Virus record (IMG/VR): IMGVR_UViG_3300050014_000823
Coordinates: 186,001-250,000 of that record
Direction: 5' to 3' (one strand)
DNA: 64,000 nt
Numbering within the stretch: the first letter of the stretch is position 1; every line of letters starts with the position of its first letter. Under the pieces are notes generated by a model. That model saw nothing but the letters and a program-made list of their open reading frames with translations. It was not told the origin of the DNA and made no database searches. Positions 32,722 through 41,355 of the stretch are shown here, one piece after another. The translations under genes and the position numbers were made by a program.

Positions 32722-33819
32722 TTATAGACTGAAATTTTTCTGCTTACGAGCCTTCTTACGAAGTTCGTTTACTTCCCTGTATGCGTCAGGATTAAACCTT
32801 TCACGCTTAACAACTGATACAAGGTGATTGAATTCGTTCTCAGTAATTACCTGTCCGATATAACCTTCTGCCTTGAGAACATAAGATTTGGGAGCACGGA
32901 GTGACTGAGACTGACCTTCGGTATCAAGTTTTGCTTCGAAGGTTAAATCAAGAATTTCTTGAATCTTTTCAGTAACATCAGCAGTCATTTTAGCTTTTGT
33001 CTGCTTCAATGCTCTTTCAAGCAAATCAACAACATTTTCCCTGTGAGTCTGCTTCAATTCCTCATATGTCTGAGTAAACTCATTCATAGTAGTTTTGTTC
33101 TTCAACTCACTAATAATTGCCAATGAACCGTAGCAGTCACGAATCATTAAATCCCATACCTGTTCAGCGTATGTGAATGAAGGAAACTTGTCTATTGCAA
33201 CAATCTCACCATCAATCAACACGATGATACCAATCAAGTTCTTTGGACGTTCAAAGTGTGCAATGAACTGTTCAAGTTTCTTGTCGAACTTCTCGAAGTA
33301 GATGTTCAAGTAGTTACCAGTACCAGACTTGGTATCTACACCTAACTTCTGAATAGCAGGGTAAATATTACCGTGACCTGATGTCTGACCAACTGCATCA
33401 AACAACATTTCACGCATAGATACGGGAATCATACGGAATTCCTGAGTTCCACGGAAGTATCCGGTCTGTCCACCTTGTACACAACCTGCGTCATGGAAAG
33501 TTGTCTGAGCACGTGGCTCAACATAACCAGCCTTTACCATACCGTGGTTCTGTGCCTGTTGCTTAGTTAAAACAGCCATCTGAGTAGGAAGAATAACTTC
33601 CTTATCCTGTTGGTTGGTAAACGTGATTTGACCATAGGTAGAGTTACTTGACACCAATGATGTCAAGGGATTCGCAAAGCGAGTATCCAATGAAAACTCA
33701 GCATCGGTTGTAAGGCATACAATCTGCATATTTAATATGCTTTGTACAATAATATTACCATCTTTATCTTTGACAGGACGGCAACCTTTCAATAATTCTG
33801 AAAAATCTTTTGTATTCAT
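32722..33819 (-). CDS. ARPP-1/DUF6569-like protein
   Basis: N......VILP......QAQNH......YV.P......AGCVQ.G core and a GIIVLIDGEIVAIDKF C-terminal segment; recognised from family patterns, not by search. Confidence 0.6.
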   Translation of the reverse strand: MNTKDFSELLKGCRPVKDKDGNIIVQSILNMQIVCLTTDAEFSLDTRFANPLTSLVSSNSTYGQITFTNQQDKEVILPTQMAVLTKQQAQNHGMVKAGYVEPRAQTTFHDAGCVQGGQTGYFRGTQEFRMIPVSMREMLFDAVGQTSGHGNIYPAIQKLGVDTKSGTGNYLNIYFEKFDKKLEQFIAHFERPKNLIGIIVLIDGEIVAIDKFPSFTYAEQVWDLMIRDCYGSLAIISELKNKTTMNEFTQTYEELKQTHRENVVDLLERALKQTKAKMTADVTEKIQEILDLTFEAKLDTEGQSQSLRAPKSYVLKAEGYIGQVITENEFNHLVSVVKRERFNPDAYREVNELRKKARKQKNFSL

Positions 33820-34376
33820 AACGTATTGATTTTAATGTTATTAATTTCACACTCTAATTTATATGCATTAAATGCTAATTCTTCTGTTTCAAATCTACCT
33901 AAAAATTTTGTTTTACCTTGAATGTTAATTCTTGAAATCCAAGGTTTTTGATATTTTTCTTTAACATACGATACTCCAACATATTTACTACTACTTTTCA
34001 TTTTTGTTCTCGCATGATGAGTATTTTCTCTTGAAGTGCACCATTCTAAGTTAGAAGAAAAATTATTTTTCTTATTTCTATCTTTATGATTTACTTCATC
34101 CAAATTATTTGGATTAGGAATGAATGCTTCTGCAATTAATCTGTGTAAACAAAATGCTTTATTTATACAATTTTTCGATAAAGTAACCAGCACATATTTA
34201 CCTTGATTAATAAACGTACCTTTCAACGAACCCTTCAGTCTTCGACTGACACCATTTCTGTTAATTTCATTTCTATCCAAACTTCTAACTCTTCCAAAAT
34301 TACTTATTTGATAATAACCCTCATATCCGACAACATCTTTCCAATTTTCAAACAATATTCTTGGGTAGTGAAACAT
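33816..34376 (-). CDS. NUMOD4-HNH-AP2 homing endonuclease
   Basis: WKDVVGYEGYYQISNFGRVRS (NUMOD4), HRLIAEAF...VNHKDRNKKNN (HNH), SKYVGVS...LGRF.TEELA..AY (AP2). Confidence 0.9.
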   Translation of the reverse strand: MFHYPRILFENWKDVVGYEGYYQISNFGRVRSLDRNEINRNGVSRRLKGSLKGTFINQGKYVLVTLSKNCINKAFCLHRLIAEAFIPNPNNLDEVNHKDRNKKNNFSSNLEWCTSRENTHHARTKMKSSSKYVGVSYVKEKYQKPWISRINIQGKTKFLGRFETEELAFNAYKLECEINNIKINTL

Positions 34377-34388
34377 ATTAATTTGCGT

Positions 34389-36032
34389 TTAAGCGTTTAC
34401 ACTAATTTTTTTAATTCTCTTAACAGGAGCAGCTTCAAGAGCAAGAACCTGGTTTTCAAGCCAACGTTTGGTGTCAATTTCAAGTAACCTTGCGTTAATC
34501 TGTGGCTGTAAAGCTGCAGGGTTGTTAATTGCCATTGTGACAACACCCTTACCTAAAGTCCTTACATTAGCACCCATTTCGGCACTGGTAATCGGTGAAA
34601 TCTGGAATGTTGGTACACTCCTTCCACTTTCTGCTTGCCAGATTGAGATAACTTCGTTAGTCAATCCATCGTAAGCGTTTTCGTAACCATCGGTTAAGAT
34701 GAAAATTGCATCGTATGGCTTTGAAGGGTTTTCTTCCTTCAAAAGTTCAATAAATGCACTTGCAATATCACTTGCAAAACCTTTAGTATCAACTCTGTTA
34801 GATTCCCTTGCAGATGCCATAAGAACCAATGAAGTGAAATCTGCAATTGCCCTTGGGGTATTCTTTGATTCGGTCTTGTCACCTGTCATTGAGATACTAC
34901 CGTCAACAATAATACCGATATTCTGGTAGAAGAAACCTGCAATTTTCTTTTTATCTGCAAGTTTTACAATTGCTGACCTTAATTCTGGTGTGAAAGTTGT
35001 TTCATAACCAGTTTTGTAAAGTGCAAGGAAGTCTGTTGCCTTTTCAACCTCAACGTGTTTTTCAACACCGAGTTTTGCGGTTGATTTGGTCTGACGGACC
35101 TGCTGGTTTACAGAAGTTACCTTCACATTCTTACGAATGAGTGCCTTTGTAGCTTCTCTCTGAACCTTAGTTGACCACAATGAGTGATACTGAGGGTGTG
35201 AAGTACTTGCAACCATACCGATAAGAACTTCTTCCGGTACTGAACTTACAGAAGTAATGTCAGTTTTTGCCTTCTGGTATTCTGACAAAAGTGGAAATTC
35301 GTTTGCAGGATACTGAACGCCAACAAAGTTAGCACCACAATCCCTCTTGAACAAGAACATCAATAACTTATATGCACGAGTATCACTACCGTTAAAGTAC
35401 TTGAGAATGTTCTTAGTTGCAATTGTCAATTCCTTGTCACTTCCGTACAAACCATTTGTGATTATGTTCTTCTGTGCAATTGAAAGCAATACTGATGTCT
35501 TTTTAACACCATAAACGTGACGTAAAATCTGAGCAATCTTGTTACGGTACTTCAATGAGTAGAATTCCAAGTTAGTTTGACCCCAGATAAAGCCAAGAAT
35601 GATTTTCCTTGACCTTTCGTTGTTAATCTTAGCATCCTTTAAGTCTACGAAAAGACGTAATACATATGGAAGACCGTTTTCACCCAAGTTGTTGAGTGCG
35701 GTAAGAACTGCCTTATCACTAAGACCATTATCATACCAGTCGATTGGATTAACAATATTACATGCGCCACCCTTCAAAGTATTTTTAAATTCGTTTAAAA
35801 GTACCTCAGACACGAACTGTCCAGTCGCACCCTTTTGACTTGCTATAATCAAAGGGAGTTCCTTAGAAAGACCGTACATCTTCTTGATTTCCTTCTGGAG
35901 AGCAATTGCTTGCTCATCCCTGCTGTGGTAGTAAGTTGCTGATGCTTTGCTACCTGATGCTGTGGTAAGACCGTCAATCAGTGTCTGTTTAACGCTTACA
36001 AGCATTTTCTGTGTTAATACCAACTTTTCCAT
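34389..36032 (-). CDS. Helical N-terminal domain plus C-terminal vWA domain protein (TROVE/Ro60-like architecture)
   Basis: MIDAS motifs IIVDGSISM and IFILTDGYEN; ~370-aa basic helical N-terminal region (INNERSRK, KYRNK); 547 aa, similar in size to Ro60. Confidence 0.65.
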   Translation of the reverse strand: MEKLVLTQKMLVSVKQTLIDGLTTASGSKASATYYHSRDEQAIALQKEIKKMYGLSKELPLIIASQKGATGQFVSEVLLNEFKNTLKGGACNIVNPIDWYDNGLSDKAVLTALNNLGENGLPYVLRLFVDLKDAKINNERSRKIILGFIWGQTNLEFYSLKYRNKIAQILRHVYGVKKTSVLLSIAQKNIITNGLYGSDKELTIATKNILKYFNGSDTRAYKLLMFLFKRDCGANFVGVQYPANEFPLLSEYQKAKTDITSVSSVPEEVLIGMVASTSHPQYHSLWSTKVQREATKALIRKNVKVTSVNQQVRQTKSTAKLGVEKHVEVEKATDFLALYKTGYETTFTPELRSAIVKLADKKKIAGFFYQNIGIIVDGSISMTGDKTESKNTPRAIADFTSLVLMASARESNRVDTKGFASDIASAFIELLKEENPSKPYDAIFILTDGYENAYDGLTNEVISIWQAESGRSVPTFQISPITSAEMGANVRTLGKGVVTMAINNPAALQPQINARLLEIDTKRWLENQVLALEAAPVKRIKKISVNA

Positions 36033-36086
36033 AGTGAATGTTTAAAAATTTACATTACAATTATTAATAAAAAACATTTCAGAGTG

Positions 36087-36116
36087 CAAATATACTATTA
36101 AATCTGAAACATCAAA
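36087..36116 (-). promoter_or_regulatory. Bacteroidota sigmaA-type promoter (TTTG-N18-TATATTTG) for the vWA-HNH-ARPP operon
   Basis: caaatata at 36087-36094 and caaa at 36113-36116. Confidence 0.65.
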
Positions 36117-36125
36117 ACATATTCG

Positions 36126-36186
36126 AAAAAAAAAACAAAAAAAATGGGCGAGTAGACACATTTCTATGTCAGTCCCCGCCCATTTT
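36126..36186 (-). terminator. Terminator closing the ncRNA operon
   Basis: aaaatgggcg...cgcccatttt stem followed by a long U-tract on the minus strand. Confidence 0.75.
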
Positions 36187-36216
36187 CTCTTCGAAAAACA
36201 CTTCTCTCTATTAAGG

Positions 36217-36310
36217 AGAAGAAGTTTAGTTGTAATTTGGTAAGTTTGTCCCTCTTCTTCATGAGAGGGATTACATTTTTCAATCTACTGTATTCACAAC
36301 AAGTTCTTCT
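36217..36310 (-). ncRNA. Handle-RNA unit 1 (Y-RNA-like; hairpin cargo)
   Basis: 5' AGAAGAACTT-GTTGTGA-ATACAGT pairs with 3' TTACAAC-TAAAC-TTCTTCT; internal TCCCTCT/AGAGGGA hairpin. Confidence 0.6.
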
Positions 36311-36552
36311 GTCAAATTGCTGCTTCAGGTGGCACGCTCCGAAGAACCCGACATCTACTCACAACAATATGTCTTTTTTTATGAAAAAATAAGCACTTCT
36401 GCTTAAAAAACCATTCTTAATCATCAAATGTTAGGCGACACGCCCCGTTTTTTGTAAAAAACACTCTGGTGCCGACAGCCTAAAAACTTCAAGCGGTGGG
36501 GTTTACTTGATTTAATTTAAATTTGGTTTAACCCTTACCACTTTTAAAACTT

Positions 36553-36707
36553 GGGGAACATTTTAATAGTATTTGTTGTTTTTCTTTTGATAGTTTAACT
36601 GACTATTGACTTTACCACTTGTCTACTTCCCCAAATTTGTTTTGTTATTTGTGGGGAAGGAAGGACTCGAACCTCCGATATTACTGTAAACACTTTTAGT
36701 TTTCCCT
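36553..36707 (-). ncRNA. Handle-RNA unit 2 containing a circularly permuted tRNA-Asn(GTT)-like domain (YrlA-like)
   Basis: Order on the minus strand: handle, T arm GGAGG-TTCGAGT-CCTTC, acceptor 3' CTTCCCC, linker, acceptor 5' GGGGAAG, D arm GAC-AAGTGGTAAA-GTC, arm ATAGT-CAGTTAA-ACTAT, handle complement. Confidence 0.75.
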
Positions 36708-36718
36708 TCGTATCTTCA

Positions 36719-36807
36719 CCCGAAAGTTTGTGTTGCCACAGGGACAGTCGGGAATTCCAGAAACACGGTTACTTTACTTTCGTAAGAGGCTTTTCCGTGC
36801 ATACCTG
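36719..36807 (-). ncRNA. Two GNRA-capped structured hairpins within the ncRNA operon
   Basis: CACGG..TTAC-GAAA-GTAA..CCGTG and CCCGA..TGTG-GCAA-CACA..TCGGG. Confidence 0.45.
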
Positions 36808-36816
36808 AAAAATTTG

Positions 36817-36925
36817 TGGGGAGAGCAGGCTTCGAACCTGCAAATCATTGAGTTCAAATCAATTGCTTTACCTTTTACTGAAAACACAATCAGTTCTCTC
36901 ATCTAAGAGAGCAGTGAGTATGTAT
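36817..36925 (-). ncRNA. Handle-RNA unit 3: hairpin-closed handle fused to the 3' two-thirds of a tRNA (anticodon loop TTTGAAC)
   Basis: CTCTC-ttagat-GAGAGAACTGATTGTGTTTTCAGT, then GGTAAAGC, ATTGA-TTTGAAC-TCAAT, GCAGG-TTCGAAG-CCTGC, TCTCCCCA. Confidence 0.6.
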
Positions 36926-37090
36926 ATTGAAATTGGATTATGGTCTACATGAGAATGAGCGTGTTATCAGCATAATCCTTAACCAACCTTATTTTCTCAA
37001 TTAGATGTAAAAACTCAAAAAAATCAATATATTTGATAAGTTTTCAATATAGCCATACGAATAAAGTTTTTTTAATTAAAAGTGGTTAAA

Positions 37091-37417
37091 ATGACAAATC
37101 AAACATTCAGTGGACAATTGGGTTTTGTTATTAAAAAAATCCACGCAATTAATAAAAGCGGAAAATGGTTCTATTTTTTTAGCAATACCGATATAACTAA
37201 TACTATTTCAAATAATTACAAAATAGTTGGTGTTGATGTTAATATATTCTCTATCACAAATAACTTAAAAACGTTAATTGATATTGTTGGCTCTTTGAAA
37301 ACCAATGATAATGAATTAAATGATTTATCTATAGAACCATACCCACTATTTAAAATTCCTGAAATAACTCAAGAGAATTCTTCTGAGGAATGGTATCTGA
37401 TATTTATTACAGGTTGA
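37091..37417 (+). CDS. Hypothetical protein (inserted in the ncRNA region)
   Basis: ORF only; overlaps the 3' end of an opposite-strand ORF. Confidence 0.35.
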   Translation: MTNQTFSGQLGFVIKKIHAINKSGKWFYFFSNTDITNTISNNYKIVGVDVNIFSITNNLKTLIDIVGSLKTNDNELNDLSIEPYPLFKIPEITQENSSEEWYLIFITG

Positions 37418-37639
37418 TGCCTTATCCCATTCTGGAATTAGATTAATTATTCTTTTAATATTTTTTTCTGGAGTCCAACAACTAAGTAATCCATTCTTAG
37501 TTATATCAATATTAAAGTAAACATGCAAAACATTATCACTTGAATAACCGTGATATTTATAGTATGCAAAGAACACTCTCCTTTCATACCATCGTAGTAG
37601 CCAATACATAAATTTATTAACTGGATTATATTTTTTCAT
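37346..37639 (-). CDS. Hypothetical protein (MKKYNPVNK...)
   Basis: ATG at 37639 preceded by a GTATTTATA motif at 37654-37662. Confidence 0.45.
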   Translation of the reverse strand: MKKYNPVNKFMYWLLRWYERRVFFAYYKYHGYSSDNVLHVYFNIDITKNGLLSCWTPEKNIKRIINLIPEWDKASTCNKYQIPFLRRILLSYFRNFK

Positions 37640-37661
37640 TATTGATATATAATTATAAATA

Positions 37662-37910
37662 CTAATAATAATTATTAGCAAAACCACCAATTGCCGTTTT
37701 GTTTAAAAAGAGTTTGTTCAATTCATCTTTACTGGGTAAATACCAATCGCTATAGCTACCTAATACCAAATCAGAACACAATTTTGCAGCATAGTTTCCT
37801 GCCCCCTGATTACTGACTACAGTGTTTGTGTTCGCATTTCCAGTTCCCAATCCTGTTGCTGTTGCCCCTGTTGTAGTATTAGTTCCATTATACCATTGTA
37901 TACCTGTACT
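37662..37910 (-). pseudogene. Fragment of a DUF1566/Lcl-C (C-type lectin fold) gene
   Basis: STGIQWYNG..TGATATGLGTG..NT...AAKLCSDL...YSDWYLPSKDELNKL...GGF.NNYY*; no in-frame ATG; stops where YWSS is expected. Confidence 0.65.
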
Positions 37911-37956
37911 ATAGTATCTTTTGTTTTATTTTTGCTATCTCCCCATATTAATACTT

Positions 37957-37968
37957 TGTTAAAGAACG
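37957..37968 (-). promoter_or_regulatory. boxA-like antitermination element (CGTTCTTTAACA)
   Basis: Near-match to the rrn boxA TGCTCTTTAACA; similar sites at 39006-39018 and 39168-39179. Confidence 0.55.
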
Positions 37969-37979
37969 TTTAAAAATTT

Positions 37980-38057
37980 AAGAAGAATTTCGTCAGTCTT
38001 GTTTTGTAGTTTTCTGATTTGCCGTCAAATTTACTGTAAACACCAACAGTTCTTCTT
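37980..38057 (-). ncRNA. Handle-RNA unit 4 (minimal)
   Basis: AAGAAGAACT-GTTGGT-GTTTACAGT ... ACTGAC-GAAA-TTCTTCTT; small TTTG-acgg-CAAA hairpin cargo. Confidence 0.6.
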
Positions 38058-38139
38058 TTATTTCTCGAAATCTATTGGCGCAGTCTTCTTGTGACTTACC
38101 TTTGTCGGAGTGTTATGCCGAGACCATTAAATTTCATTG

Positions 38140-38212
38140 TAGCGTTGGACAGGACTCGAACCTGTGATTCCGAGCTTATGAGGCTCGTGAGATGCCGCTT
38201 CTCTACCCCGCT
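38140..38212 (-). tRNA. tRNA-Met(CAT), initiator-like 5' end, imperfect acceptor stem, CCA not encoded
   Basis: AGCGGGG-TA-GAGA..TCTC, anticodon arm CGAGC-CTCATAA-GCTCG, T arm ACAGG-TTCGAGT-CCTGT. Confidence 0.8.
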
Positions 38213-38958
38213 ATATGCTTCTCAAAATTTTCAAATTCCTTTGTTACAAAGGATTTATCGAATTTTCCTAAATCTTTTATAACATATGGTTCATACCCAC
38301 AACCAATAATTTCTTTAATTTTTAATTTATCTCTATTCTCTGTTTGTAATAATGAATGATTTTTCGATATTTTCTTATAATGCCAAGCACCATTCCATAA
38401 TACTGCAATTTTATAATCTTCTATAATTACATCTGCATCCCATCCATTAAAAATTTGTTCATTACAAAGAACCAACTTAAATTTCTCACAACATAATTTA
38501 GCAAAATATATTTCGTTTTTACTTCTTTTATTTTGTGATTTTACAGAACATAAACCACCAATTCTTTCATACCCTTTCAGTGGCATTCGGAATTTTGTGG
38601 CACATGAATGTCCACAAAATCTTTGGTTTACTTTCTTCTGTTCAAAACTATTTTCACAATATTCACAATTAATAATTTTAACCTTTTTGTTTTTTAATGA
38701 AAGTTTATCTTTTGTTCCTTGTGAATGTACTCTCTTATTAGCACAGCCTCGTGAACAATAATATATTTTCTTTTGTGGGTGTAGTTTTTCACGTTCATTT
38801 ACAATAAAAATTTTAGCACATGAAATACATTTAACCGAATAATCAACAAACTTACCATATTTTTTATCATTTTTTTGAGTATTTTGAAACTCATTTTGAC
38901 AAGAAACATTACAAAATTTATTTTTTACCAATTTTCCACAATTCAAACAATTATTCAT
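38203..38958 (-). CDS. Putative homing endonuclease: CxxC zinc-finger repeats plus a PD-(D/E)XK/Vsr-like domain
   Basis: Three C..C...(F/Y)C...C repeats; WDADVIIEDYKIAVLWNGAWH; own late motif at 38972-38980; last codons overlap the tRNA-Met 5' end. Confidence 0.7.
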   Translation of the reverse strand: MNNCLNCGKLVKNKFCNVSCQNEFQNTQKNDKKYGKFVDYSVKCISCAKIFIVNEREKLHPQKKIYYCSRGCANKRVHSQGTKDKLSLKNKKVKIINCEYCENSFEQKKVNQRFCGHSCATKFRMPLKGYERIGGLCSVKSQNKRSKNEIYFAKLCCEKFKLVLCNEQIFNGWDADVIIEDYKIAVLWNGAWHYKKISKNHSLLQTENRDKLKIKEIIGCGYEPYVIKDLGKFDKSFVTKEFENFEKHIAG

Positions 38959-39028
38959 AATACATATTTATTATAAATACTGCGGACTTTTAAATCGAAC
39001 CATAGTTTTCAAAGAACATTATAAGGTA

Positions 39029-39154
39029 AAAAGGATAATTCGTTTGTTATTTTTGTTTTAAACAATGAGGTTTCGACACCCCAACATTCTGCCTGAAAAG
39101 CGGACACTCTACTTTGAGTTAATTGTATACTGTAATAACGAACAGTTTCCTTTT
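39029..39154 (-). ncRNA. Handle-RNA unit 5 enclosing a degenerate cloverleaf (anticodon loop TTTTCAG, Glu-like)
   Basis: AAAAGGAAACT-GTTCGTTATT-ACAGT ... AATAACAAAC-GAATTA-TCCTTTT; inside: ACAAT/ATTGT stem, ACTC-aaagta-GAGT D arm, TCCGC-TTTTCAG-GCAGA arm, degenerate T arm. Confidence 0.65.
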
Positions 39155-39167
39155 GTATTTTAAATCT

Positions 39168-39230
39168 TGTTAAAGAACATTTGTCATTTCGGACGATGCA
39201 AACATAATACACTTTTATTTAACATGCAAG
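39168..39230 (-). promoter_or_regulatory. SigmaA-type promoter (TTG-N20-TATGTTTG) followed by boxA-like TGTTCTTTAACA, driving the ncRNA operon
   Basis: caag 39227-39230, caaacata 39199-39206, tgttaaagaaca 39168-39179; a late-type motif also lies at 39276-39284. Confidence 0.65.
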
Positions 39231-39324
39231 TGTTTTCTGAAAAAAATTAAAAATATTTTTACTATCGTCTGGGATTATAAATACGTAATAGTTTTAAAAA
39301 AGTTACAAAAAAATATAAAAATTT

Positions 39325-41355
39325 TTATCTTAATCTTATATCTTCCTCATTTACACGCATTTTACCCAAGTAATCAAACACATGTTTTTGGTCAGAACTT
39401 ACTTCATCGGGGTCAATTAACAACTTTTTTTCTGCCTCACTAAGGTCAATTTTTTTCTTAGAAATCGGATTTTTATTCACATTGCTGACCATTTCGTGCA
39501 CAGATTTTCGAACTTCTGGCTCAATTTTCGGCTTAATATCTTCGAATTTTACCTCAGTTTCATTCGTGGCAGTAGTAAAAGTTTCTCCCGACCAATTTAA
39601 TAACTCTGGTTCTACACCATCATTTACACCCTCACTTACACCATCATTTACACCATCACTTTTTTCAATAGGTTTGTCTTCAAGTATGAATTTATCGTCA
39701 CTTGCTTCCTCATTTGCACCCTCATTTGCACCCTCACTTACACCATCATTTACACCATCATTATTATCTATTTCACGTGTTGAGATTCCCGGAGATACAA
39801 ATTGTGAAGTATCTATGGGTTTCTTTTCCTCGATATTTTCTGATTTTATATATGCACTTCTCAATAACTCGTCTTCCGCAGTTAATCCCCCTGCATTGCT
39901 TACAAGAGTATTAAATAAACCACCCGGAGAATGAGATTCAATTGATTCTGCTTTTCCAGCTATTACATCTTCACTATATTTTTTCTTTACACTATATGTT
40001 GTACCTACATATCTTTCGTCAGTAATTTTAATTTCCATTGTATCGTTGTTAAAGATACAGTCTTTAAATGTCTGACCGTCTTTAGCAAACCTTGCCTTAA
40101 TAATACGTATACTTGCGAGACTTGCTTCTTTCTGGTCAGGAGTTTTAGCTACCGACATAAAGAAGTGTGCTTTCTGTACTCTCTTGATGTTACCACCAGA
40201 CTGATGCGCCTCAACGAGTTCAGCATCAAAACCTGAACGATTACTCTGAATTGCAGACCAACATGGAATGTCAAAATCACTTGCCATTGCTTCAAACGAC
40301 TTAACAATTTGAAGTTCAGCCTCATTACGGTCATTGACTTTCTTGTGAGATTCTAAACAATCAAGATAGTCAAGTATAATAATATCGAATTTAATACCTG
40401 TTTTTTTCTGTTCTCTGAGAATCCAGTCTTTAATATCCGTCATTGTGGTATTTTCCTGGCTGAACTTTTTCACTTTAAGTTTACCCGGATTCATGTGTGC
40501 AATATGGTCATTTGCCTTTTGAAGTGCTTCGTCATTTCTTTCATCGAGTTCACTTAAAGGTATTCCTGTCCAAATAGTAACATGCTTTCTCTTAATTTGT
40601 TCTTCGGTATCCTCAAAAATAATCTGACATACATTATAATCATGTGCACGTGCAGTATTGGCAATTTTAGTCAGTAATGTTGTTTTACCAACACCTGAAG
40701 GAGTCAAAATTAATCCAATTTCGCCTTTACCCAATCCACCACCAGTAAGTGTGTCAATAACACCAACACCAGTAGGAATTGTTTTACGAAATTCTTTCAT
40801 TAGTGCTTTGTCAAGACCCTCTGTTGCATCACTACCATTATCTTCTGTATTGCCGATAAGTGCAATTTTTTGCATTTTTTCGTCAAACTCAGGTAAGAAG
40901 GTCTTGCTACGAATCTCACCTGTTTTTACTTTTGCAAGAACACCCTCTGCCCATTTGCGTATTTCTTGCTGTTTAATAAATTCAGTAGTTGCCTGTTGAA
41001 CAACTATTCCATCGTGCATTAAAGTCTGATTGAGAATTCTTTCATTCCACAACTTAACTCTTTCGATTACAGCAAAAAGTGATTCTTCCTCAATAACATT
41101 ATTGGGAGATTTGAATTCGTTTATGGCTTGGATTACACTCTGATTCTGTAGATTAGGTACTTTACCGTATCTCTTGACGTATTCCAACATAATAAGGAAT
41201 AACCTCTTTATGTTAGGGTCATCAAAGTATTCTACTGCTAAGATTGGTATTGTTCTCTCGGCATATTCTGGTTCAACCAGAAGTTGCCACAATAATTTTT
41301 GTTGAAATTCCGGACCTTTGTATGCCGTTAAGGTATTATCTAATTGTTCGCTCAT
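39325..41355 (-). CDS. Replicative DnaB/T4 gp41-like helicase with an acidic C-terminal extension
   Basis: IPTG...D....GG...GE; Walker A PSGVGKT; IILDYLD; SAIQSNR; IKARF. Confidence 0.92.
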   Translation of the reverse strand: MSEQLDNTLTAYKGPEFQQKLLWQLLVEPEYAERTIPILAVEYFDDPNIKRLFLIMLEYVKRYGKVPNLQNQSVIQAINEFKSPNNVIEEESLFAVIERVKLWNERILNQTLMHDGIVVQQATTEFIKQQEIRKWAEGVLAKVKTGEIRSKTFLPEFDEKMQKIALIGNTEDNGSDATEGLDKALMKEFRKTIPTGVGVIDTLTGGGLGKGEIGLILTPSGVGKTTLLTKIANTARAHDYNVCQIIFEDTEEQIKRKHVTIWTGIPLSELDERNDEALQKANDHIAHMNPGKLKVKKFSQENTTMTDIKDWILREQKKTGIKFDIIILDYLDCLESHKKVNDRNEAELQIVKSFEAMASDFDIPCWSAIQSNRSGFDAELVEAHQSGGNIKRVQKAHFFMSVAKTPDQKEASLASIRIIKARFAKDGQTFKDCIFNNDTMEIKITDERYVGTTYSVKKKYSEDVIAGKAESIESHSPGGLFNTLVSNAGGLTAEDELLRSAYIKSENIEEKKPIDTSQFVSPGISTREIDNNDGVNDGVSEGANEGANEEASDDKFILEDKPIEKSDGVNDGVSEGVNDGVEPELLNWSGETFTTATNETEVKFEDIKPKIEPEVRKSVHEMVSNVNKNPISKKKIDLSEAEKKLLIDPDEVSSDQKHVFDYLGKMRVNEEDIRLR
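39612..39760 (-). repeat. 12-bp-unit coding tandem repeats (GVND/GVSE/GANE) in the helicase tail
   Basis: tacaccatcatt / tacaccctcact / tgcaccctcatt units in two clusters. Confidence 0.75.

Follow-up and report, generated by a model that had tools for sequence, protein, structure and literature searches.

Arrays of probable Y-RNA-like tRNA mimics beside a predicted Ro60-like gene in jumbo phages

Organization of the locus

The DNA analysed here (the window, 64,000 nucleotides) is part of the 299-kb jumbo-phage contig IMGVR_UViG_3300050014_000823. Nearly all of its genes are located on the minus strand, including those for a DnaB-like helicase (39325-41355), a 5'-3' exonuclease, a RecA-like protein, and several homing endonucleases. 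A 3-kb gene-poor island, flanked by the helicase gene and gene 34389-36032, contains an array of RNA units that share a bipartite stem, which we call the handle. Gene 34389-36032 (minus strand) encodes a 547-residue protein, for which structure prediction and Foldseek indicate a Ro60/Rsr-like fold. Five handle units are present between 36.2 and 39.2 kb, all on the minus strand and 0.2-3.1 kb upstream of this gene. Four of them, units 1, 2, 4, and 5, had been described in an initial annotation of the sequence. It missed the fifth copy, unit 3, which carries the sequence UCAGU and has its conserved block at positions 36876-36895.

The units belong to five classes, A to E, the order of which is kept across related phages. 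Unit 1 (class E, 36213-36310) is a handle with a hairpin cargo. Its outer helix pairs 36304-36310 with 36217-36223, the inner helix pairs 36294-36300 with 36229-36235, and ACAGU is positioned at 36287-36291. In unit 2 (class C, 36550-36706), the handle strands 36683-36706 and 36554-36574 enclose a circularly permuted tRNA. Unit 3 (class D) is a tRNA interrupted in its D arm. In the window, it is divided into a 3' part (36817-36919), which comprises the 3' portion of the tRNA, and a 5' part (37909-37944), consisting of the tRNA 5' end GGGGAGAUAGCAAAA, an A-rich linker, and the 3' strand of the inner helix. Unit 4 (class B, 37980-38057), delineated by its fold and an alignment of 19 orthologues, is a handle with a minihelix similar to an anticodon stem-loop. 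Unit 5 (class A, 39029-39154) has a tRNA of normal order (39059-39128, anticodon UUC) between the handle strands. All of these features are encoded on the minus strand.

Structure of the handle

Two helices make up the handle, an outer one of 5-8 bp and an inner one of 6-10 bp, and between them is an asymmetric internal loop with the 5' strand RAAC(U/G). The inner helix opens to two conserved single strands. The 5' one is U(A/U)CAGUA, and the 3' one is an A-rich run similar to AAAACAA. The internal loops have 1-7 nucleotides opposite 2-9 nucleotides, and the two helices together form an interrupted duplex of about 15-20 bp around each RNA. The stems proposed in the initial annotation for units 1, 2, 4, and 5 are all present at the positions it gave, on the minus strand. 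They are AGAAGAA/UUCUUCU (outer) and GUUGUGA/UUACAAC (inner) in unit 1, GGGAA/UUCCC and AGUGUUU/AAAUACU in unit 2, AAGAAGAA/UUCUUCUU and (U)GUUGGU/ACUGAC(G) in unit 4, and AAAAGGA/UCCUUUU and GUUCGUUAUU/AAUAACAAAC in unit 5, where the inner pairing contains one C.A mismatch. RNAfold favours the register GUUCGUU/AACGAAU for the inner helix of unit 5, whereas the 18-member alignment of the class backs the register proposed originally. The four units also have identical spacing, AACU-N10-ACAGUA, a fixed register of 20 nucleotides that had been overlooked.

The single-sequence folds of the units have z-scores of just -1.8 to -2.6 relative to shuffled sequences. A scan of duplex energies found the units to be no stronger than shuffled sequence, and a loose descriptor of a stem plus ACAGU produced as many matches in shuffled sequence. 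A motif with variable spacing was matched eight times, compared to 2.8 expected. The motif cannot be established from single-sequence energetics, and therefore the case for the handle rests on comparative evidence. A conserved ACU/AGU mini-hairpin inside the 5' block was considered and dropped, since it is not conserved across the classes.

Comparative evidence for the pairing

Relatives of the array were gathered using helicase homologues and a motif scan of viral contigs, which provided about 30 syntenic islands with about 90 units (loci are denoted by L and a number). In class B (alignment A2, 19 orthologues), 91% of the alignment cells are paired, compared to 38-58% when the partners are slid relative to each other. 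The corresponding values for class A (alignment A4, 18 orthologues) are 91% and 49-60%. Five pairs of class A have changed on both sides, a number matched by none of 500 shuffles, and the outer helix of this class occurs as AAAAGGA/UCCUUUU, AAAAGAGA/UCUCUUUU, and AAGUGAGA/UCUCACUU. When run unaided on 17 class C orthologues, RNAalifold recovered the handle together with a cloverleaf (35 pairs, 20 of them with compensatory changes). It also recovered the handle and cloverleaf of class D, with compensatory changes in 14 of 30 pairs.

The strands of a handle pair preferentially with each other. Cognate 5' and 3' strands have a mean pairing energy of -13.7 kcal/mol, whereas most cross-class partners reach -4.7 to -7.2 kcal/mol, and of 5096 cross-class combinations, only 105 reach the pairing strength of the cognate strands. 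Classes B and E share their outer helix and cross-pair at about -10.3 kcal/mol. A covariance model built from class B only (R1) matched unit 1 at 36.3 bits (E 3e-6); it matched unit 4 at 87 bits, but this unit was in the training set. R1 recovers classes B and E only. The model runs end to end and does not tolerate a cargo of 100 nucleotides, and the cross-class statistics were therefore computed by a script. G.U pairs are frequent in the handles, in agreement with RNA transcribed from the minus strand only, since they would be A.C on the other strand. The claim of the initial annotation that the pairing is kept while the sequence changes across paralogues is thus borne out, with compensatory and G.U changes both within and between the classes.

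Cargo modules

The tRNA of unit 5 matches the Rfam tRNA model at 36.4 bits, and orthologous class A cargos reach up to 62 bits. ACAGU abuts position 1 of the tRNA in unit 5, and the distance between ACAGU and the tRNA 5' end varies among class A orthologues.

The units of class C have the order T arm, acceptor 3' strand, linker of 3-20 nucleotides, acceptor 5' strand, D arm, and anticodon arm, with the handle at the position of the variable loop. In unit 2, the T arm (36660-36676) is followed by the acceptor 3' strand with an additional A (36652-36659), the linker (36633-36651), the acceptor 5' strand (36626-36632), the D arm, and the anticodon arm (36590-36606) with the loop CAGUUAA, all on the minus strand. 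Two-piece transfer-messenger RNA (tmRNA) shares with unit 2 the succession of T arm, acceptor 3' strand, linker, and acceptor 5' strand. However, unit 2 lacks pseudoknots and a tag reading frame and possesses D and anticodon arms. Its match to the permuted-tmRNA model is weak (19.7 bits, E 0.36, gathering score 47).

Class D is a tRNA with the D arm interrupted by a handle that is closed as a hairpin, and intact orthologues fold in this manner. The 3' part of unit 3 contains the gap ACUCACUG, the outer hairpin CUCUC-UUAGAU-GAGAG (36896-36911), and the block AACU-N10-UCAGUA (36876-36895). These are followed by the rest of the D loop, the anticodon arm, the T arm, and the acceptor 3' strand ending in CCCCA. 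The Rfam tRNA model matches this part partially (36825-36879, 27.5 bits). The two parts of the unit are separated by an insertion of about 1 kb (36920-37908) inside the 3' strand of the handle, and contiguous orthologues are present in L003, L055, and L130. The insertion carries small open reading frames (ORFs) at 37346-37690 (minus strand), 37662-37850 (minus strand), and 37082-37417 (plus strand); PHROG and Pfam scans of the first and the last of these produced no match. The tRNA 5' end of class D units is, in addition, complementary to the handle segment that separates the inner 3' strand from the outer one (L055:7743-7790, L130:4113-4160, L003:8970-9015, and L017:11964-12015; for example, GAGAUAG/CUAUCUC and GAGGUAUGCGA/UCGCAUUCCUC). 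Such pairing is in competition with the cloverleaf and the handle, and RNAfold favours it in two cases.

Two classes have smaller cargos. The minihelix of unit 4, UUUGA-CGGCAAA-UCAGA (38013-38029), has a 5-bp stem and a 7-nucleotide loop, like an anticodon stem-loop. The cargo of unit 1 is a plain hairpin that covaries.

The anticodon triplets differ widely between orthologous units, the rest of which is conserved (alignments A4 and A5, loci L003-L156). Class A units have the anticodons UUC, UCA, CAA, CAU, GUC, CGC, CGU, and UAU, and class C units have GUU, AUG, AUU, UUA, UGA, CUU, and UUG. Suppressor types are represented by UCA in six of 18 class A units and by UUA in some class C units. Long ORFs of the window read through in the standard code. 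Several class C loops contain A or G in place of the expected U33. Many class C and D orthologues encode A-CCA directly after the acceptor 3' strand.

ARAGORN called no tRNA anywhere in the window, whereas the Rfam tRNA model found three. When Rfam gathering scores were applied to the window and ten loci, tRNA was the only family to pass, and a search of positions 35900-39400 at E <= 10 gave no Y-RNA-type and no ribozyme family. A hairpin ribozyme, other small ribozymes, a group I intron, and a CRISPR repeat were considered as identities of the element and were left without Rfam support.

The tRNA-like cargos raise the possibility that the handle is an intron-like maturation element, which is excised and the ends ligated, so that classes D and C become ordinary tRNAs, while in class A it is only a leader-trailer stem. 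Class C would then pass through a circular stage, which RNase P and 3' processing would open, as in the permuted tRNA genes of Cyanidioschyzon. The handle is located in the D arm, variable region, or termini, which are positions of introns or permutation junctions in archaeal and algal tRNA genes. The encoded A-CCA, the tRNA scores of the cargos, and the resemblance of the anticodons to real decoding sets, including suppressor types, agree with such maturation. Nevertheless, we consider it unlikely. Classes B and E bear the same handle without a tRNA to mature. A bulge-helix-bulge motif consists of 3-nucleotide bulges flanking a 4-bp helix, which is not the geometry of the handle with its longer inner helix and asymmetric loops. 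Furthermore, a bacterial splicing endonuclease is not known (10.1101/312249). Unit 2 resembles the permuted and split tRNA genes found in archaea and in red and green algae (Soma et al. 2007, as summarized in 10.1101/312249), in which the 3' half likewise comes first, a short linker connects the acceptor ends, and the two termini of the transcript pair. According to the same summary, the bulge-helix-bulge of those genes is cut by a splicing endonuclease, with a junction that mostly falls in the anticodon region. The units described here differ in their longer bipartite helix, other conserved bases, and occurrence in a phage of a presumably bacterial host.

Expression and RNA ends

A 97-nucleotide contig from a sediment metatranscriptome, with a depth of 139, covers positions 36213-36309 without a mismatch. 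It spans unit 1, with its limits at the base of the outer helix and 4 nucleotides beyond it, and retains the whole handle. Two peat metatranscriptomes cover 36183/36192-36323, and an adapter-flanked RNA end is located at 36550, 4 nucleotides past the outer helix of unit 2. The RNAs of units 1 and 2 thus end at the base of the outer helix with a 3' overhang of about 4 nucleotides. Among the contigs of four metatranscriptome runs, there was no handle-removing joint, back-joint, circle, or ligated tRNA, although assembled contigs drop rare and short forms. Three joints in the RNA contigs were evaluated as possible handle excision and rejected, since they are DNA-level differences of relatives without a 251-residue ORF of the window (38203-38958) or without spacers. 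The abundant RNA that retains the complete handle and the lack of excision joints in the assembled contigs also speak against an intron-like handle, which would, in addition, leave the conserved linkage to the Ro60-like gene unexplained.

Alternatively, the stems could be generic processing or stability elements, such as leader-trailer helices of the RNase III type or exonuclease blocks, which would set the ends of small RNAs in a polycistronic island without a dedicated protein partner. The interrupted duplex of about 15-20 bp that flanks each RNA has a length suitable for an RNase III stem of about two helical turns, and the position of the RNA ends at the base of the outer helix agrees with such processing. 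RNase III cleavage leaves 2-nucleotide 3' overhangs. This explanation is very unlikely, because generic stems do not need a 20-nucleotide fixed register and invariant unpaired bases, which persist even in loci where the neighbouring protein is about 30% identical. The helix remains uncleaved in the stable 97-nucleotide RNA, and a closed handle within the D arm of the class D tRNA would make no sense as an RNase III site.

The conserved 5' block with its fixed register is positioned directly upstream of the cargo, as might be expected of a DNA-level feature such as a promoter, a recombination site, or an inverted-repeat mobile element. However, the block is transcribed, since the RNA contig begins with the outer helix, and changes in the 5' strand are accompanied by changes in the 3' strand; the promoter reading of the block is rejected on these grounds. 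The common G.U pairs, which would be A.C on the other strand, also disagree with a function in DNA. Moreover, a separate promoter-like GUUCUUU(A/G)A box of the GUUCUUUAA type precedes several units in the window (39170-39178, with further copies at 39009-39017 and 37959-37967, all on the minus strand) and in relatives. A role of the handle at the DNA level is thus exceedingly improbable. The array is closed after unit 1 by a hairpin similar to an intrinsic terminator, followed by a U run (36146-36181, minus strand, recognized by sequence inspection); the same arrangement is present in L003, L055, and L085.

The Ro60-like protein and its linkage to the array

Searches of PHROG, Pfam, and PDB sequences with the 547-residue protein gave no match. 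Its neighbours in the ESM Atlas are TROVE/vWA_Ro60 clusters (vWA, von Willebrand factor A domain). An exhaustive HMMER search identified 293 cluster representatives, which are annotated as hypothetical and originate mostly from 300-360-kb phages of peat, sediment, and fresh water. The AlphaFold (AF2) model of the protein has a predicted local distance difference test score of 92 and a predicted template modelling (TM) score of 0.90. All 11 Foldseek matches in the PDB at E <= 0.001 are Ro60/Rsr structures, with E-values from 1e-7 to 7e-4, alignments over the full length (about 580 aligned columns), and TM-scores of about 0.4-0.5. They include human and Xenopus Ro60, Rsr of D. radiodurans, and the protein of Thermus phage phiLo (9l5y). 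The protein consists of a helical-repeat N-terminal part and a C-terminal vWA domain with the metal-ion-dependent adhesion site motif DxSxS, in which D377 and S381 do not vary, and S379 has a conservation of at least 90%, in an alignment of 58 homologues. A profile search of PDB sequences gave just a weak vWA match for the family. The sequence and profile searches did not name a family, so the Ro60 fold is assigned through structure prediction and Foldseek. According to the predicted structure, gene 34389-36032 encodes a very divergent Ro60/Rsr-like ring protein.

The Ro-like gene is positioned directly downstream of the array, on the same strand, in 26 of 30 array loci. The remaining four contigs have no Ro-like match, and at least three of them visibly end too soon. 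The association extends to Ro-like genes with 29-31% identity (L162, L164, and L166), which are preceded by units of the same architecture, with an outer helix of 5-7 bp, a 5' AC(U/C)N loop, an inner helix, and a cargo that is a tRNA or a permuted tRNA. L164 and L166 retain the AACU...(A/U)CAG(U/A) block. The conserved single strand of L162 is AUAGAUUUUCCG instead, a difference that is expected if the RNA and the protein co-evolve. Besides its 29%-identical Ro-like gene and three handle units, the L164 contig (L164:1274-2686) carries a gene of the Omp85 family; therefore, the system may also occur in bacterial chromosomes or prophages.

The next gene but one in the window encodes an ARPP-1 domain protein (32722-33819, minus strand; Pfam PF20208, E 3.7e-15). 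A gene for an HNH/NUMOD4 homing endonuclease (33816-34376, minus strand) is wedged between the Ro-like and ARPP-1 genes. The ARPP-1 protein is 34-36% identical to the product of the gene directly after the Ro-like gene in L162 and L166, and it is possibly the third component of the system. Genes for RtcB, RNA ligase, PNPase, or canonical TROVE protein were not found among the 40 ORFs scanned out of the roughly 60 in the window that are at least 110 residues long.

The handle could instead be bound by a factor other than the Ro60-like protein, such as ARPP-1 or a host tRNA-binding enzyme, or it could be catalytic, a self-cleaving or self-ligating ribozyme that uses ACAGU and the A-rich strand. 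The position of ARPP-1 after the Ro-like gene in distant loci and its prediction by its describers as an enzyme acting on ribose-containing substrates (PMC9503650) are consistent with the former. The adjacency of ACAGU to tRNA position 1 in unit 5 is consistent with the latter. However, ARPP-1 has no known RNA-binding role, whereas that of Ro60 is documented, no ribozyme family was matched even at E <= 10, and the variable distance from ACAGU to the tRNA 5' end disagrees with a catalytic site. Both versions together are highly unlikely.

Relation to Y RNAs and proposed function

Y RNAs and Ro60 are conserved from bacteria to humans. The proposed origin of Y RNAs from tRNAs rests on mimics that lack an anticodon arm. 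Y RNAs are encoded within 4 kb of Ro60 on the same strand, and their paired ends form an interrupted stem to which Ro binds. YrlA of bacteria and phages has the order T arm, closed acceptor stem-loop, D arm (PMC4201824; 10.1101/312249). YrlA of M. smegmatis is cleaved by RNase P and CCA is added to it (PMC4201824). The Ro60 of Thermus phage phiLo binds two Y-like RNAs encoded upstream of its gene, and the structure has been solved (PMC12135203).

The arrays described here follow this arrangement. Their RNAs have paired ends that form an interrupted stem, a Ro60-like gene is located within a few kilobases on the same strand, and the class C module has the order T arm, closed acceptor stem-loop, D arm, with an additional anticodon arm. 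Classes A, D, B, and E have other topologies. Because paired ends, a same-strand Ro neighbour, and a tRNA-like module characterize the Ro60/Y-RNA arrangement, we read the handle as a Ro-docking module. It is probably the common module of an undescribed Y-RNA-like family of tRNA mimics and most likely docks the adjacent Ro60-like ring. The initial annotation had not recognized the Ro60/Y-RNA paradigm or the tRNA nature of the cargo. Its view of the element as a structured RNA module and not a DNA repeat agrees with the conserved pairing, the expression, the linkage to a Ro60-fold gene, and the lack of an Rfam match other than tRNA. As for the protein-binding RNA that it had proposed, the structured module is located beside a Ro60-fold gene, which would be the binding partner.

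The similarity to YrlA/Ro60 systems (Chen et al. 2014, PMC4201824; 10.1101/312249) includes small RNAs encoded on the same strand as a Ro60-fold gene and closely upstream of it, the interrupted stem of paired ends, and a second module that mimics tRNA, in YrlA order in class C. YrlA contains the motif GNCGAAN0-1G, whereas the RNAs described here contain RAAC(U/G)...U(A/U)CAGUA. The handle replaces the anticodon stem in YrlA and leaves the tRNA at the variable region, D arm, or termini in the phage units. Unlike YrlA, the phage RNAs have a full anticodon arm, the triplet of which varies between related phages, and the number of paralogous RNAs per locus is five or more. The divergence of the protein places it beyond the reach of the Pfam TROVE model, and ARPP-1 is a conserved neighbour. 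The phiLo system (PMC12135203) is alike in that the Ro60 is phage-encoded and the Y-like RNAs, Yrl1 and Yrl2, are upstream of the gene. It has two RNAs with a CGAA bulge, no complete tRNA modules, and demonstrated binding, whereas the array described here has five RNAs, tRNA cargo, another motif, and binding proposed from the locus. The general features of Y RNAs are present and the defining motif and a match to a curated model are absent, and therefore the RNAs are Y-RNA-like but outside the described YrlA family. The Rfam scan, which the initial annotation had suggested as a test of novelty, identified no family other than tRNA, but the RNAs are not of a wholly new kind, as they fit the Ro60/Y-RNA paradigm of tRNA mimics represented by YrlA.

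Several observations weigh against the assignment of the handle as a Ro-docking module. The 5' strand lacks the canonical Ro-contact motifs, both GGUCCGA of animals and GNCGAAN0-1G, which YrlA has close to its 5' end, and CGAA is confined to the 3' strand of classes A and B. No Y-RNA-type model of Rfam matches. The Pfam TROVE model does not match the 547-residue protein at E <= 10 or any of 58 family members at 1e-3, and the TM-scores to Ro60 are only about 0.5. Most array loci belong to one phage clade, and synteny within a clade is not independent evidence. Classes A and D resemble functional tRNA genes (up to 62 bits, CCA in some), in which the handle could be a maturation element. Finally, we infer the binding of Ro to the handle from the arrangement of the locus.

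Based on the Ro-docking assignment, the function of the array can be proposed. Each unit yields a minus-strand transcript, a small RNA of about 80-165 nucleotides, the ends of which pair into the bipartite stem. The handle, as the predicted docking site, would hold the Ro60-like ring protein, and the far end forms the variable module, which is a complete tRNA, a permuted tRNA, a tRNA with the handle in its D arm, an isolated mimic of an anticodon stem-loop, or a plain hairpin. By analogy with bacterial YrlA, the RNA may act as a tether or gate. The tRNA-shaped effector module would presumably be presented to proteins that recognize tRNA, such as nucleases, modification or repair enzymes, and possibly the translation apparatus.

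We tentatively speculate, with a low degree of confidence, that the Ro60-like ring carries genuine or near-genuine tRNAs on a common handle, with the fast-evolving anticodon loop as the specificity element. The particles would then be anticodon-specific decoys, sensors, or repair platforms directed against host defences that target tRNA, with ARPP-1 as an enzymatic partner. Alternatively, RNase P might open the acceptor loop and produce two-piece chargeable tRNAs, including the UCA and UUA suppressors, held together by the Ro-bound arm. In either form, the RNAs would be living intermediates between tRNAs and Y RNAs.

The searched literature contains no description of this handle-RNA family, and nothing relevant on permuted or split tRNA genes in phages or on D-loop tRNA introns in jumbo phages. 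Among phages, unit 2 and its orthologues, which possess an anticodon arm of their own, appear to be the first reported case of a circularly permuted full cloverleaf, and class D appears to be the first reported case of a D-arm-interrupted tRNA gene. Unusual features of the family are the arrays with five or more paralogues, the three topologies of its complete tRNAs, anticodons that vary between related phages, a different motif, a very divergent Ro60, and the ARPP-1 neighbour. The family may supply forms missing from the proposed origin of Y RNAs, namely complete cloverleafs joined to a Ro-type handle at three positions, some with acceptor ends that encode CCA, with anticodons that differ among related phages and with five or more RNAs in the array of each Ro gene. 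The assignment provides a predicted fold and a likely role for a large family of hypothetical proteins, and it connects Ro/Y ribonucleoproteins with an ARPP-1 enzyme, a type that had already been noted in ADP-ribose conflict systems. Should an arms race with host tRNA nucleases underlie the variation of the anticodons, the arrays would offer a tractable model for the purpose of tRNA mimicry by Y RNAs.

Additional features of the island

Between units 2 and 1, the minus strand of 36315-36550 contains a conserved non-coding stretch with the block CCUAACAUUUGAUGAUUAAGAAUGG and no Rfam match. It includes a covarying stem, AAGUGGU...ACCGCUU in the window and GAGUGGU...ACCGCUC in L085, and RNA run X6 covers it at a depth of 22-32. 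The stretch may be another RNA of the handle/Ro system. A conserved hairpin at 36719-36752 (minus strand) has the stem CCCGA...UCGGG around the near-invariant loop GUCCCUGUGGCAACACAAACUU. In relatives, the stem is changed in a compensatory manner to CCCGG/CCGGG or CCCCG/CGGGG, and the hairpin follows class D or B units in many phages.

A tRNA-Met-like gene (38141-38211, minus strand; anticodon CAU, 44 bits) has no handle and contains two mismatches in the acceptor stem. Between this gene and unit 5, a cysteine-rich ORF of 251 residues (38203-38958, minus strand) has no match in PHROG or Pfam, and its DNA is 76% identical to Prevotella phage Lak-C1 over 229 nucleotides. The ORF is present in L003 and absent from L055, L085, and the relative in the RNA run (joint 38211->39028), and it looks like an optional mobile gene. 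Positions 39613-39762, within the helicase gene, contain 12-nucleotide tandem repeats of the UACACCAUCAUU and CCUCAUUUACAC types, read on the opposite strand.

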